A DNA stretch of 64,000 nucleotides, from positions 17,918,001-17,982,000 of the forward strand of contig JBHGNT010000005.1 in the NCBI GenBank assembly GCA_043228905.1. Direction: 5' to 3'. Positions 1 through 32,188 of this stretch are shown here, piece by piece. The translations under genes and the position numbers were made by a program. The notes under the pieces were generated by a model. The model did no database searches. It had not been told where the DNA came from and saw only the letters and a list, made by a program, of their open reading frames with translations. The DNA comes from Azolla caroliniana. Its lineage: Eukaryota > Plantae > Polypodiophyta. Every line of letters starts with the position of its first letter. Positions within the stretch are counted from its first letter, which is position 1.

Positions 1-160
1 AAATGTCTACATTTAGCAACTCTTCTTGTGTGCGCGATTTAGTATTACAAGTCAGTCGTGTTTAATTACATTTATTTCCATGCTCTTTTCCTATCTCTAA
101 AATGAGGAGAGAGTCTATCTCATATAGATACACCATCTTAAAAGTGATGTATATCACAAG

Positions 161-776
161 GCCGTCTTAGTTTAGCCGGTAGAGCGCGTGGCTTTTAACC
201 AGGTGGTCGTGGGTTCAATTCCCTCAGACGGCGAGAATTTCAACCCATCTCTTGGTTTCATAAATTTCCATTCCCATTCCATGCAGTGGAGCGTCTTAGC
301 TAATGTGCGTGTGGTTGCAAGGCTGTCTTACCTCAGCCGGTAGAGCGTGTGGCTTTTAACCATGTGGTCATGGGTTCGATTCCCACAGATGGTGAGAAGT
401 CCAACCATTTGTTGTTTTCCCAAACTTCACTTCCCATTCCATGGATTCGTTGTACAAAATGTATACATGAGCAACCTCTTCTTTTGGGCCCTATTTTGTA
501 TGACAAGTCGGTCGTGTTTAATTACCTTGAGTTCCATGCTCTTTTTATCTCTTGAAGATGAGGAGAGAGTGTGTCTTGTATAGAGACACCATCTTAATAT
601 CATTCTATACCCTAGGAGAAAGTAATGTATACCACAAGACCGTCTTACATCAGCTTGTAAAGCGCGTGCCTTTTAACCATATGAGAAAATAATGTACCGC
701 AAGGCCATTTTAGCTTAGCTAGTAGAGCACGTGGCTTCTAAACATGTGGTCGTGTGTTTGATTCCGACAGACGATG
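161..776 (+). pseudogene. Degenerate tRNA-Lys copies starting at 161, 322, 639 (truncated) and 704
   Basis: Recognisable tRNA-Lys sequence with stem mismatches or A/B-box substitutions. Confidence 0.8.
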
Positions 777-1019
777 AGAAGTTCAACCCATCACTTGGTT
801 TCACAAACATCACTTCCCATTCCATGCATTCGTTGTACATAATGTATACACTGAGCAACTCTTCTTGTAGGCGCGATTTAGTATGACAAGTCGGTCATGT
901 TTAATTACATTGATTTCCATGCTCGTTTCCTCTCTCGAAAATGAGGAGAGAGTGTCTCTTGCATAGATTCATGATGATAATATAATTCTACATCCTAGAA
1001 GAAACCAATGTACTTCATG

Positions 1020-1092
1020 GCCATCTTAGCTCAGCTGGTAGAGCGCGTGGCTTTTAACCACGTGGTCGTGGGTTCGATTCCCACAGATGGCG
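1020..1092 (+). tRNA. tRNA-Lys(UUU), fully paired cloverleaf
   Basis: Acceptor GCCATCT/AGATGGC+G, D stem GCTC/GAGC, anticodon stem CGTGG/CCACG with loop CTTTTAA, T stem GTGGG/CCCAC with loop TTCGATT; intact A and B boxes. Confidence 0.9.
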
Positions 1093-1380
1093 AGAAGTTC
1101 AAACCATCTGTTCGTTTCCCAAACTTCACTTCCCATTCCATGCATTCGTTCTACAAAATGTCTCTTGGTTTCCCAAACTTCACTTCCCATTCCATGCAGT
1201 CATTACCTTTATTTGGATGCTCTTTTCCTCTCTTAGAGATGAGGAGAAAGTGTCTCTATGCATTACCTTTATTTGGATGCTCTTTTCCTCTCTTAGAGAT
1301 GAGGACAAAGTGTCTCTTGCATAGATTCATGGTCATAATATAATTCTACTCCCTGGGAGAAACCAATGTACCACCTCATG

Positions 1381-1453
1381 GCCATTTTAGCTCAGCCGGT
1401 AGAGTGCGTGGCTTTTAACCACGTGGTCGTGGGTTCGATTCCCACAAATGGCG
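1381..1453 (+). tRNA. tRNA-Lys(UUU), foldable variant
   Basis: Acceptor GCCATTT/AAATGGC fully paired, one G-U in the D stem, anticodon and T arms intact. Confidence 0.75.
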
Positions 1454-27879: not shown

Positions 27880-29869
27880 CCGCAAGGCTGTCTTAGCTCA
27901 ATCGTTAGAGCGCGTGGCTTTTAACCACATGGTCGTGACTTCGATTCCCAAGACAGTAAGAAGTTCAACCAATCTCATGGTTTCAGAAACTGCACTTCCC
28001 ACTCCATGCATTCAATTAGAAAAAATGAATAGATTGAGCAACCTCTTCTTCTTGGTGAGGTTTACTATGGGAAATTGGTCGTGTTTAATTACCTTTAGTT
28101 GCATGCTCATTTCCCATTGATGGGTTGCAAGTTCAACCCATCTCTTGGTTTCCCAAACTTCACTTCCCATTCCATGGATTCGTTGTACAAAATGTATACA
28201 TTGAGAAACCTCTTCTTGTGGGCATGATTTTGTATGACAAGGTGGTCGTGTTTAAATACATTGATTTATATGCTCTTTTCCTCTCTCGAAGATGGGAAGA
28301 GAGTGTGTCTCGTATAGACTCGCCATCTTGATATAATTCTATAGCCTAGGAGAAACAAATGACCGCAAGGCCATCTTAGGTCAGCTGGTTGAGCACATGG
28401 CTTTTAACCACGTGGTCATGGGTTCGATTCCCACAGACAGTGAGAAGTTAAACCCATCTCTTGGTTTCCCAAACTTCACTTCCCATTCCATGTATTCGTT
28501 GTACAAAATGTATACATTGAGCAACTCTTCTTGTGGGCGCGATTTAGTATGACATGTCGGTCGTGTTTAATTGCATTGATTTGCATGCTCCTTTCCTCTC
28601 TCGAAGATGAGGACAGAGTGTGTCTCGTATAGATTCACCATCATAATATAATTCTATACCCTAGGAGAAACTAATGTCCCGCAAGGCTGTCTTAGCTCAG
28701 TCGGTAGAGCCTGTGGCTTTTAACCATGTGGTCATGGGTTCGATTCGCACAGACCGCGAGAAGTCCAACCATCTCTTGTTTTCCCAAACTTCACTTCCCC
28801 TTCCATGGATTCGTTGTACAAAATGTATACATTGAGCAACCTCTTCTTCTGGGCACTATTTTGTACGACAAGTCAGTCGTGTTTAATTACCTTTAGTTGC
28901 ATGCTCTTTTCATCTCTCGAAGATGAGCAGAGAGTGTGTCTCATATACAGACACCATCTTAATATAATTCTATACCCTAGGAGAAAGTAATCTTACCTCA
29001 GATTGTAGAGCGCGTGGCTTTTAACCACGTGGTCGTGGGTTCGATTCCCACATATAGCGAGAATTTCAACCTATCTCTTGGCTTCACAAATTTTACTTCC
29101 CATTCCATGCAGTCATTACCTTTAGTTGCATGTTCTTTTCCTCTCTCGAAGATGAGCAGAGAGTGTCTCTCGCATAGATTCATGATCATAATATAATTCT
29201 ACACCCTAGGAGTAACCAATGTACCATCCCATGGCCATCTTAGCTCAGCCGGTAGAGCACATGGCTTTTAACCACGTGGTCATGGGTTCGATTCCCACAG
29301 ACAGGCGAGAAGTTTAACCATCTCTTGCTTTCCCAAACTTCACTTCCCATTCCATGCATTCGTTGTACAAAATGTATACATTGAGCAACCTCTTCTTGTG
29401 GGCACGATTTTGTATGATAAGTTAGTCGTGTTTAAATACATTGATTTGCATGCCCTTTTCCTCTCTCGAAGATGAGGAGAGAGAGTGTCTCGTATAGATT
29501 CACCATCTTAATATAACGCTATACCATAGGACAAAACAATGTACCGCAAGGCCGTCTTAGCTTAGCCAGTAGAGCACGTGGCTTTTAAACGCGTACTAGT
29601 GTGTTTGATTCCGACAGACGATGAGAAGTTCAACCCATCACTTGGTTTCACAAACATCACTTCCCATTCCATGCATTCGTTGTACATAATCTATACATTG
29701 AGCAACTCTTCTTGTGGGCGCAATCGAGTGTGACAAGTCGGTCATGTTTACTTACATTGATTTGCATGCTCGTTTCCTATCTCGAAAATGAGGAGAGATT
29801 GTCTTTCGCATAGATTCATGATCATAATATAATTCTACATTCTAGGAGAAACCAATATACCACCTCATG

Positions 29870-29942
29870 GCCATCTTAGCTCAGCTGGTAGAGCGCGTGG
29901 CTTTTAACCACGTGGTCGTGGGTTCGATTCCCACAGACGGCG
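29870..29942 (+). tRNA. tRNA-Lys(UUU), near intact
   Basis: Canonical except A4:C69. Confidence 0.72.
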
Positions 29943-30728
29943 AGAAGTTCAAACCATCTCTTCATTTCCCAAACTTCACTTCCCATTCCATGCATTCGTT
30001 GTACAAAATGTCTACATTGAGCAACCTGTTCTTGTGGGTCCAATTTTGTATGACAAGTCGGTCGTGTTTAATTACATTGATTTGCATCCTCTTTTCCTAT
30101 CTCGAAGATTCACCATCTTAATATAATTCTATACCCTAGGAGAAAGTAATGTACACCGCAAGGTTGTCTTAGCTCAACCGGTAGAGTGCGTGGCTTTTTA
30201 CCACGTGGTCGTCGGTTTGATTCCCACAGACGGTGAAAAGGTCAACCCATCTCTTGGTTTCCCAAACTTCACTTCCCATTTTATGCAGTCATTACCTTTA
30301 GTTGCATGCTCTTTTCCTCTCTCAAAGATGAGGAGAGAATGTCTCTCGCATAGATTCACGATCATAATATAATTCTACACCCTAGGAGAAACCAATGTAC
30401 CACCTCATGGCCAACTTAGCTCAGCCGGTAGAGTGCGTGGCTTTTAACGACATGGTCATGGGATCGATTCCCACAGATGGCGAGAAGTTCAACCCATCTC
30501 TTGGTTTCCCAAACTTCACTTCCCATTGCATGCATTCGTTGTACAAAATGTATACATTGAGCAACACTTTTTGTGGACACTATTTTGTATGACAAGTCGG
30601 TCGTGTTTATTAACATTGATTTGCATGCTCTTTTCCTCTCCCGAAAATGAGGAGAGAGTGTCTCTCGCATAGATTCACGGTCATAATACAATTCTACTCC
30701 CTAGCAGAAACCAATGTACCACCTCATG

Positions 30729-30801
30729 GCCATCTTAGCTCAGCCGGTAGAGTGCGTGGCTTTTAACCACGTGGTCGTGGGTTCGATTCCCACAGACGGC
30801 G
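30729..30801 (+). tRNA. tRNA-Lys(UUU), near intact
   Basis: A4:C69 mismatch and G-U in the D stem; anticodon and T arms intact. Confidence 0.62.
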
Positions 30802-32188
30802 AGAACTTTAACCCATCTCTAGGTTTCCCAAACTTAACTTTCCATTCCATGCATTCGTTGTACAAAATGTCTACATTGAGCAACCTCTTCTTGTGGGCAC
30901 GATTTTGTATGACAAGTCGGTCGTGTTTAATTCCATTGATTTACATCATCTTTTCGTATCTCAAAGATGAGGAAAGAGTGTGTCTCGATTCCCACAGACG
31001 GCGAGAACTTCAACCCATCTCTTGGTTTCACAAACTTCACTTCCCATTCCATGTAGTCATTGGAAAAAATGAATTGTTGGTGAGGTTTAGTATGGGAAAT
31101 AGGTCGTGTTTAATTACCTTGAGTTGCATGCTCTTTTCTTCGAGAATTGTTGGTGAGGTTTAGTATGGGAAATTGGTCGTGTTTAATTACCTTGAGTTGC
31201 ATGCTCCTTTCGTCTCTCGAAGATGAGGAGACAGTGTCTTTTGCATAGATTCAAGATCATAATATAATTTACAACCTAGGTGAAACCAATGGACCACCTC
31301 ATGGCCGTCTTAGCTCGGCGAGAAGAGCGCATGGCTTTTAACTACGTGGTAGTGTTTCGATTCCCATAGACGGCGAGAAGTTCAACCGATCTCTTGGTTT
31401 CCCAAATTCACTTTCGATTCAATGCACTCATTGTAAAAAATGAATAGATTGAGCAACCTCTTCTTGTTGACGAGTGGCTTTTAACCAAGTGGTCGCGTGT
31501 TCGATTCCCACAGACGGCGAGAAGTTCAACGCATCTCTTGGTTTCCCAAACTTCACTTCCCATTTCATGCATTTGTTGTACAATATGCATACATTGAGCA
31601 ACCTTGTCTTGTAAGTGAGGTTTACTATGACTTGTTGTACAATATCCATATATTGAGCAACCTTGTATTGTGGGCGAGGTTTTTTATGAGAAGTTGGTCG
31701 TGTTTCCTTACATATATTTGCATGCTCTTTTTCTCTCATGAAGATAAGGAGAGAGTCTCTCTCGCATAGATTCACCATCAGAATATAATGCTACGCCCTA
31801 GGAGAAACCAATGTCACACCACATGGCCAAAGAGAGAGACTCTACTTGGTACATCATTAACTCATGTTTGAGTGTGTGTGTGTGTGTGTGTATGTAACTG
31901 ATGTATTCTTGTCCGCCCACAACGATTGTATGAAGCGCTCTTACTATGGGAAACATTCACACCTAGCACTATTGTTGTAGCCATTTTTGTAGCCTTCGTA
32001 AGTTTTGGATTTGCATGCATATGACAAATTGGAACCCGTCCATACTTATCAGGTTCATCAAATCCTTTGCAATTTTCCGAAAAACCTACACCCCCCCATT
32101 GCTCGAAGTTTCACTATTTTCCCGAATGCTCTTGAGTCAATCAACAATACTCATGCCTCCAACACGAAGTGATATATATCTATCTATG

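Follow-up and report, generated by a model that had tools for sequence, protein, structure and literature searches.

In a window of 64,000 nucleotides from Azolla caroliniana (contig JBHGNT010000005.1, positions 17,918,001 to 17,982,000), we identified a tandem array which, with a probability of roughly 0.8, is an old cluster in which a nuclear tRNA-Lys(UUU) gene was repeated together with its flanks and which has since degenerated into satellite-like DNA. A blastn search of the window with the best copy as query revealed 41 tRNA-Lys(UUU)-derived segments spanning positions 161-31,519, close to the approximately 42 of the original prediction and, as it had also stated, in a single orientation (41 of 41 on the plus strand). 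No such segment was found by blastn in the rest of the window beyond 31,826. The Rfam tRNA model placed 32 of the 41 copies at or above its gathering score, and ARAGORN made 26 calls (23 Lys-UUU, one Glu-UUC and two with a UUA anticodon). A tRNA cluster has been defined as at least five tRNA genes within 5 kb (PMC13578239, PMC13437025), and the array reaches this density, for example with 10 Rfam-passing tRNAs between 28370 and 31375.

The repeated segment extends well beyond the tRNA. Based on the consensus of a whole-unit profile (nhmmer), the unit measures 318 bp, in agreement with a predicted size of about 0.3 kb, and consists of a 73-nt tRNA and a 245-nt spacer; 63 unit fragments were detected in the window. 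The spacer repeats together with the tRNA, i.e., the flanks belong to the unit, and a 21-nt spacer motif occurred 17 times, compared with 0 times in shuffled sequence. At the 3' end of the consensus, a TATA-like stretch and another one bearing CAA lead directly into the next tRNA. With tRNA gene and flanks repeated in one orientation and all copies going back to one Lys(UUU) sequence, the array is of single isotype origin, as the predicted single-isoacceptor tandem array implied. Since position 1 of the window corresponds to unit position 137, the array runs on past the left edge, another point anticipated from the sequence. It is indeed large, although its net DNA of 12,983 bp, scattered over positions 1-31,826 in five segments, is slightly less than the predicted 14 kb or so. 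The segments, the two best-preserved copies, the inserted elements and the neighboring gene are as follows.

1..1938, plus strand: array segment 1 (nhmmer unit profile, blastn), running off the left edge, with tRNA copies on the plus strand at 161, 322, 640 (fragment), 704, 1020, 1381 and 1766 (fragment)
1020..1092, plus strand: best-preserved tRNA-Lys(UUU) copy (Rfam 74.7 bits; A and B boxes present)
1381..1453, plus strand: second copy with every stem pair (Rfam 73.0 bits)
1939..5700, plus strand: 5'-truncated LINE that interrupts a unit near unit position 216 (Pfam Exo_endo_phos, RVT_1)
5685..7333, plus strand: array segment 2, with block A from 5838 on, a paralogue of 29870-31141
7352..20347, plus strand: Copia-type LTR retrotransposon with 701-bp LTRs at 7374-8074 and 19647-20347
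11946..19070, minus strand: Gypsy element (chromovirus) nested in the Copia element, with a chromodomain and 485-bp LTRs
20348..24730, plus strand: array segment 3, with 13 tRNA-derived copies
24731..25664, minus strand: Copia reverse-transcriptase fragment within the array (Pfam RVT_2 on ORF 24653-25297; flanks read)
25665..26738, plus strand: array segment 4 (unit profile)
26740..27879, plus strand: 1.14-kb insertion starting with TG, directly upstream of a tRNA start and flanked by ACCAC and ACCGC
27888..31826, plus strand: array segment 5, the best preserved, with its end at 31826, after the first 4 nt of a tRNA
32563..35758, plus strand: PLS-class PPR gene, a neighbor outside the array (Pfam PPR families and E motif; best hits in ferns)

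At least five transposon insertions split the array. For one of them, the Copia element with LTRs 97.0% identical to each other, a 5-bp target-site duplication (AATTT) was present at both sides, and removal of the element restores the unit junction that is seen unbroken at 28115/28129; because of this duplication and the known junction, we regard the insertions as younger than the array. The nested Gypsy element has LTRs that are 99.2% identical and an intact 1,467-aa polyprotein ORF. The LINE contains AP-endonuclease and reverse-transcriptase domains, and reading of its flanks placed the resumption of the unit within about 15 nt past its (TTTC)n-like tail. The 1.14-kb insertion sits between unit positions 314 and 2 and probably represents a non-autonomous element or a solo LTR.

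The array is old and without ongoing homogenization. The median pairwise identity between units was 0.827 (K2P 0.198), and the mean identity was 0.824-0.828 in every distance class; because identity is independent of separation, there is no ongoing local turnover. The pattern of a homogenized satellite, in which neighbors are more alike than distant copies, was thus absent at every distance, and the nearest relative lay within 700 bp (approximately two units) in 0 of 42 cases. Duplications of multi-unit blocks were nevertheless visible. A four-unit higher-order period of 1,181 bp relates 28129-29808 to 29310-30987 (83.7% identity), and the 1.7-kb stretch 23009-24717 is paralogous to 29318-30991 at 84.9% identity. 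The youngest block duplicates were 5838-7333 and 29870-31141, which are collinear with unit pairs 92-96.5% identical (K = 0.036-0.06), while an internal-deletion variant joining unit positions 1-131 to 202-317 is common to the units at 6135, 23905, 25665, 28990 and 30167. For the proposed "birth and death" of copies, death is plain to see, whereas birth is old even in the youngest duplicates and local turnover has ceased.

Most copies are decaying pseudogenes, as had been predicted. A standard cloverleaf with the UUU anticodon in a 7-nt loop is present, the inferred ancestor forms all 21 stem pairs, and the discriminator is G73, which we take to be consistent with a eukaryotic tRNA-Lys. All 21 pairs were kept by only two copies, 1020 and 1381. 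The former folds at -34.3 kcal/mol (z -4.6), has an A-U pair at 4-69 produced by two CpG transitions, and reaches its first T4 131 nt downstream; in the latter, pairs 4-69 and 6-67 are both altered on each side. Six copies had been singled out as the only ones that fold well (1020, 1381, 5838, 24455, 29870 and 30729). All six rank within the Rfam top seven (67-75 bits), but copies 25664, 21409 and 21802 score nearly as high. Of 36 copies, eight have an intact A box together with an intact B box, 16 have a perfect B box, and three reach a T4 terminator within 25 nt; the most frequent distance to the first T4 is 102 nt. A few young copies still resemble usable tRNA genes; their good appearance would reflect the little time they have had to decay rather than visible protection by selection.

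The substitution spectrum fits that of methylated, silent DNA, both properties being inferred from the spectrum itself. C-to-T rates decreased from CG (0.185) through CHG (0.091) to CHH (0.061), compared with 0.022 for A/T transitions. This is consistent with the suggestion that the array is methylated and silent, as Arabidopsis clusters are (PMC7544208). Relative to a CpG-corrected ancestor, the tRNA and the spacer have diverged almost equally (10.5% and 10.9%), and stem pairs are broken 95 times, where changes falling at random would give 103.6 +/- 7.4 (P = 0.14). When the youngest paralogues were compared, the tRNA differed more than the spacer (8.8% vs 4.6%, Fisher P = 0.005), an excess that the CpG density of the tRNA would predict. 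Other measures allow that weak or early constraint may have acted on the tRNA: at non-CpG sites, 6.7% of tRNA positions were off consensus compared with 10.0% in the spacer; context-corrected changes per tRNA copy numbered 7.3 where 10.8 were expected; and copies in which no more than one pair is broken were somewhat in excess (10 vs 6.2 expected, P = 0.035). Subfamily structure and spacer alignment noise may instead produce such signals. The best-conserved part of the unit was its first 130 nt, and spacer positions 101-120 were as conserved as the tRNA. On these sequence comparisons, the decay looks neutral and methylation-driven, with no detectable selection on the tRNA.

From these data, a probable history of the locus can be outlined. 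A founding segment of 318 bp, made up of the 73-nt tRNA gene, approximately 245 nt of flank, and the TATA-like stretch and CAA motif that precede the next tRNA, would have been amplified head to tail, presumably by unequal exchange or replication slippage. Blocks of several units, whose structure is directly observed, would then have been re-duplicated, the four-unit 1,181-bp period arising first and a 1.5-kb block being copied later between both ends of the region. Amplification would have stopped, after which the array evolved with the observed lack of detectable selection on its tRNAs, probably cytosine-methylated and silent to judge from its mutations. Since then, the array would have collected transitions in CpG, CHG and CHH contexts, short deletions and duplications within it, and the retrotransposon insertions, at least five in number.

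Could the cluster instead be a silenced reserve whose intact copies (1020, 1381, 29870, 30729, 5838 and 24455) are activated in certain tissues or conditions as a source of additional tRNA-Lys(UUU)? The Arabidopsis Ser-Tyr-Tyr cluster is a documented precedent, being reactivated in root tips (PMC12308677, cited in PMC13578239). Beyond the two copies with complete stems, seven further copies have a single break, low-damage copies are in slight surplus, and the candidates retain both boxes, a TATA-like element at about -44 to -36 and CAA at about -15. However, the inferred ancestral sequence is present in no copy, most good copies carry an A4-C69 mismatch, and the first T4 typically lies 102 nt away. 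Stem-breaking changes are moreover distributed as by chance, and the tRNA parts have outpaced their spacers in change since the last duplications, which makes such a reserve unlikely. The possibility that the unit is a tRNA-Lys-derived retroposon, its body unrelated to its tRNA head, that became locally tandem is still less probable. Like tRNA-derived SINEs, the unit combines a tRNA head bearing an internal Pol III promoter with an unrelated body of similar size; Pol III is predicted to run about 100 nt beyond the tRNA, as far as the first T4, so that the transcript would be SINE-sized; conservation is best in the first 130 nt; and one more whole-unit copy exists in another public assembly (P0001). 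Unlike SINEs, the array is strictly tandem: neighboring units adjoin directly and in register, their junctions being uniform, single units have no flanking target-site duplications, and the consensus lacks a tail of poly(A) or simple repeats, its 3' end resembling instead the tRNA gene's own upstream region with the TATA-like stretch and CAA. Using blastn and the unit profile, we found 0 copies in 31,827-64,000 or within the inserted transposons, so that the dispersed SINE named in the original prediction as its refuting case found no support within the 64-kb window. A comparison of the spacer motifs with metagenomes gave no match.

A structural role in chromatin, as a centromere-like satellite or a TFIIIC/condensin boundary platform beside the PPR gene, appears highly improbable. 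The array stops about 740 bp short of that gene, a perfect B box survives in 16 of 36 copies, and tRNA genes can serve as boundaries in yeast and mammals. The units, however, are unhomogenized and only 83% alike, in contrast to functional centromeric satellites; the A and B boxes are mostly eroded (both intact in 8 of 36); and the array has freely taken up transposons of various ages. The exclusion of plant tRNA genes from centromeric regions has also been reported in a survey (PMC13437025). The centromere-like, platform, boundary and tRNA-fragment roles that had been proposed therefore lack support in the sequence. Inflation of one or a few tRNA genes by mis-assembly has a negligible probability, and we found no point in its favor: artefactual expansion would produce near-identical copies, whereas here every unit is distinct at a median pairwise identity of 83%, and the array bears unique indels as well as transposon insertions that have been dated, one of which has a target-site duplication.

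An old, decayed tandem cluster thus remains our preferred reading, and it has close counterparts in other plants. Clusters of many tRNA isotypes occur across plants (PMC12652284, PMC13437025), and those in Arabidopsis are methylated and silent (PMC7544208, PMC2886086). Like the tRNA-Pro homocluster and the Ser-Tyr-Tyr cluster on Arabidopsis thaliana chromosome 1, the Azolla array consists of dozens of copies of a tRNA gene and its flanks, arranged head to tail in a single orientation, and its methylation-type mutation spectrum matches their methylation and transcriptional silence. It differs from them in its units only 83% alike, terminators at about 100 nt, transposon invasion, Lys(UUU) isotype and fern host. 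RNAP III cis-elements are reported to be well conserved in the Arabidopsis clusters (PMC7544208), whereas most Azolla copies are broken; conserved A and B boxes and a nearby poly(T) were found in 8 of 36 and 3 of 36 copies, respectively. This loss marks the Azolla cluster as decayed, in comparison with intact clusters. Lineage-specific arrays have been described for Ile and Ala in maize and Gln in barley, with clusters of up to 110 genes (PMC13437025, PMC12652284). They share with the present array the local tandem amplification of one isotype, but the genes counted in the surveys are annotated, for the most part intact, and uniform in their flanks, whereas the Azolla copies are mostly pseudogenes. 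Long tandem tRNA arrays also form a sizeable repeat class in Entamoeba (PMC2652664). Those arrays constitute the working tRNA set because nearly all genomic tRNA genes lie in them, while the Azolla array is a decaying surplus. Since nearly all of its copies are broken and drift like junk DNA, we consider it a large but ordinary plant tRNA cluster.

By itself, this array matters little, as one more tandem tRNA cluster. Such a cluster of this isotype, Lys-UUU, and in this plant group, the ferns, is undescribed in the consulted portions of literature such as PMC7544208, PMC12652284 and PMC13437025; those of the latter two mention no Lys array, and PMC12652284 nowhere mentions ferns. The array is a clean natural example of the decay of a silenced tRNA array, in which CpG-rich tRNA bodies mutate at about twice the spacer rate and apparent compensatory stem changes come from paired CpG transitions without selection. 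It also advises caution with fern tRNA gene counts, since 32 of 41 mostly dead copies pass the Rfam threshold. These counts are very high, at approximately 7,500 in Azolla (PMC13437025). The array contributes to a possible genome-wide pattern that deserves a census: we tentatively raise the idea, which we think somewhat more likely wrong than right, that tandem tRNA-gene satellites are a pervasive, lineage-typical repeat class in Azolla caroliniana, of which the present array is only one instance. If so, the repeated birth and decay of such arrays, not whole-genome duplication, might explain the high tRNA gene counts of ferns.

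We characterized the content and extent of the tRNA-Lys(UUU) array using several independent searches. ARAGORN called 26 tRNA genes, 23 of them Lys(UUU); every one is on the + strand, and together they span 161 to 31,375 of the window. With the Rfam tRNA model, 32 copies in the window scored above the gathering score, and blastn with the best copy recovered 41 tRNA-derived segments, again all on the + strand; the same search found no tRNA-derived segment in the rest of the window, right of 31,519. A unit profile built from eleven full-length units gave a consensus of 318 bp, in which a tRNA of 73 nt is followed by 245 nt of spacer, and recovered 63 unit fragments, with the net array DNA amounting to 12,983 bp. 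The spacer was repeated as faithfully as the tRNA, since a 21-nt spacer motif occurred 17 times, compared with 0 in shuffles. The original prediction of ~42 copies of a ~0.3-kb unit, totaling ~14 kb, was thus essentially right, and its list of well-folding copies agreed with the top Rfam scores. The profile placed the array DNA in the following segments:

1-1938, + strand, array segment
5685-7333, + strand, array segment
20348-24730, + strand, array segment
25665-26738, + strand, array segment
27888-31826, + strand, array segment

Because position 1 of the window falls in the middle of a unit, the array extends to the left beyond the window. On the right it ends at 31,826, 4 nt inside a tRNA, and at 31826-31900 the array gives way to unrelated sequence with a (GT)n run; this edge therefore looks truncated rather than like a natural unit end.

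The interruptions between these segments are transposons that were inserted into a pre-existing array, as listed here:

1939 to ~5700, LINE truncated at the 5' end, carrying an endonuclease domain and a reverse transcriptase domain (domain matches)
7352-20347, Copia element with 701-bp LTRs 97.0% identical (domains, LTR comparison)
nested in the 7352-20347 Copia element, on the opposite strand to it, young chromodomain Gypsy element with 485-bp LTRs 99.2% identical
24731-25664, Copia reverse-transcriptase fragment (domain match)
26740-27879, 1.14-kb insert beginning with TG and flanked by ACCAC and ACCGC (sequence reading)

At the LINE, the unit breaks off at unit position 216 on the left and picks up within ~15 nt on the right. 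The 7352-20347 Copia element has AATTT on both sides, and its flanks, when rejoined, form exactly the unit junction that is found uninterrupted at 28115/28129. The Gypsy element nested within it has an intact ORF of 1,467 aa. The 26740-27879 insert may be a solo LTR. It also contains a tRNA-like stretch, at ~27197-27265, whose motifs resemble the A and B boxes; a (TATT)n run comes after it. This stretch was called by neither ARAGORN nor Rfam, and at relaxed Rfam thresholds the spacer and the insert yielded nothing beyond the tRNAs.

The remainder of the window consists of a PPR gene and several Copia elements:

32563-35758, PPR gene of the PLS class, encoding an E motif; separated from the array end by ~740 bp

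The best named matches of the PPR protein were from the ferns Adiantum (48-52% identity) and Ceratopteris (45-47%), and the protein search returned no near-identical protein. Among the Copia elements, at 49608-54608 and 54886-63682, a young one with 99%-identical LTRs lies beside two older copies on the minus strand, which are ~4.85 kb apart and ~80% alike.

The original prediction had named a SINE that formed a local tandem as its refuting case, and the evidence in the window speaks against it. The consensus unit carries no tail, no target-site duplications surround the units, which abut in register, and neither blastn nor the unit profile detected copies in the other 32 kb of the window or within the inserted elements. 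A SINE was accordingly rejected as far as it can be tested within the window, and the reading as an assembly artefact was also rejected. To look for relatives elsewhere, we ran a protein search with a profile of the translated 92-aa ORF, which recurs in the unit copies. Only one public protein, P0001, encoded on a 1,331-bp ENA contig, matched over the whole unit, while the other 85 matches covered the translated tRNA part alone. P0001 shared 62-78% identity with the units in the window and, because this lies within the array's own range, it is uninformative about arrangement or species. Metagenome scans with the conserved spacer motifs gave 0 matches. A separate observation concerns P0002, an annotated "hypothetical protein" of melon (Cucumis melo): it is translated from four tRNA-like repeats that stand in tandem at spacings of ~30-50 aa. 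Annotation of tandem tRNA arrays as proteins therefore occurs in other plants.

The tandem units are old and show no homogenization. Pairwise unit identity had a median of 0.827 (K2P 0.198), mean identity was 0.824-0.828 whatever the separation, and 0 of 42 unit fragments had their closest relative within 700 bp. Nearest relatives instead lay at fixed offsets, which indicates block duplication. With a 4-unit period of 1,181 bp, 28129-29808 and 29310-30987 are 83.7% identical over 1.7 kb; 23009-24717 and 29318-30991 share 84.9% identity; and 5838-7333 and 29870-31141 are collinear, with unit pairs 92-96.5% identical. A deletion variant of the unit, in which positions 1-131 are joined to 202-317 (~245 bp), recurs at 6135, 23905, 25665, 28990 and 30167, in agreement with this picture. 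The most recent duplications (K 0.036-0.06) somewhat predate the Copia insertion, whose LTRs differ by 3%, and since nothing newer than these duplications is visible, the "birth" of the array ended long ago.

To characterize the subsequent decay, we scored substitutions per copy against a CpG-corrected ancestor, counting C-to-T on both strands. C-to-T rates were 0.185 in CG, 0.091 in CHG and 0.061 in CHH contexts, with A/T transitions at 0.022. In plants, cytosine methylation in each of these contexts would be expected to leave such a gradient, from which we infer methylation of the array. The decay is neutral and looks methylation-driven. The tRNA has diverged from the ancestor by 10.5% in total and the spacer by 10.9%, and the placement of stem-breaking changes matched chance expectation (95 broken stem pairs vs 103.6 +/- 7.4 expected; P = 0.14). 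In the youngest paralogous pairs, the tRNA even differed more than the spacer (8.8% vs 4.6%, P = 0.005), and most of this excess arises because the tRNA is richer in CpG, with 18 such positions in its 73 nt compared with 14 in the 245-nt spacer. The extreme pair, 6788-7104 and 30729-30987, differed at 8 of 73 tRNA positions and at 1 of 186 spacer positions, a contrast due either to a sharply localized mutation hot spot or to a short tract of conversion limited to the tRNA.

Copies 1020 and 1381 (named by start position), the only ones retaining all 21 stem pairs, carry changes that appear compensatory: in both, two CpG transitions turned pair 4-69 from G-C into A-U, and in 1381 pair 6-67 went from C-G to U-A. 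These are paired transitions, expected without selection where transitions dominate. Most copies have A at position 4, forming an A4-C69 mismatch wherever C69 is retained; this A either was already present in an early master unit, from which it was inherited, or has arisen repeatedly. Because tRNA damage and spacer divergence per unit were not significantly correlated (Spearman 0.24, P = 0.25), we do not claim age as the sole reason for the good copies.

Some residual signs of constraint were also observed. Non-CpG divergence from the consensus was lower in the tRNA (6.7%) than in the spacer (10.0%), the tRNA carried 7.3 changes per copy vs 10.8 expected, and low-damage copies were slightly in excess (10 vs 6.2 expected, P = 0.035). 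These signs could reflect selection on units early in the growth of the array, or alternatively they could stem from spacer subfamilies combined with alignment noise. Spacer positions 101-120 were as conserved as the tRNA.

As for Pol III signals, the 3' end of the consensus unit has a TATA-like stretch (~-44 to -36 relative to the next tRNA) and, closer to that tRNA, a CAA (~-15), in keeping with the upstream region of a real tRNA gene. Strict A and B boxes were both kept in only 8 of 36 copies. A T4 within 25 nt downstream was missing in 33 of 36, with the first T4 at a modal distance of 102 nt. In a recent survey, tRNA genes followed by four or more Ts were at their lowest in non-angiosperm land plants (PMC13437025), so the remote terminator is not decisive alone. 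Centromere, boundary and TFIIIC roles, which the original prediction had also raised, found no sequence support and several features speak against them; the centromere and boundary readings were rejected on these grounds.

Tandem tRNA gene clusters are already established in plants. The Pro and Ser-Tyr-Tyr clusters of Arabidopsis are silent and methylated (PMC7544208, PMC2886086), arrays of Ile and Ala tRNA genes occur in maize and of Gln in barley (PMC13437025), and clusters reach 110 genes, with 21 amino acids and 43 anticodons covered (PMC12652284). The Azolla array fits the definition of such a cluster and would share its epigenetic fate, but it differs in isotype and host group. The main difference is one of state: rather than a set of uniform genes, the Azolla array is a late-stage, transposon-invaded wreck.
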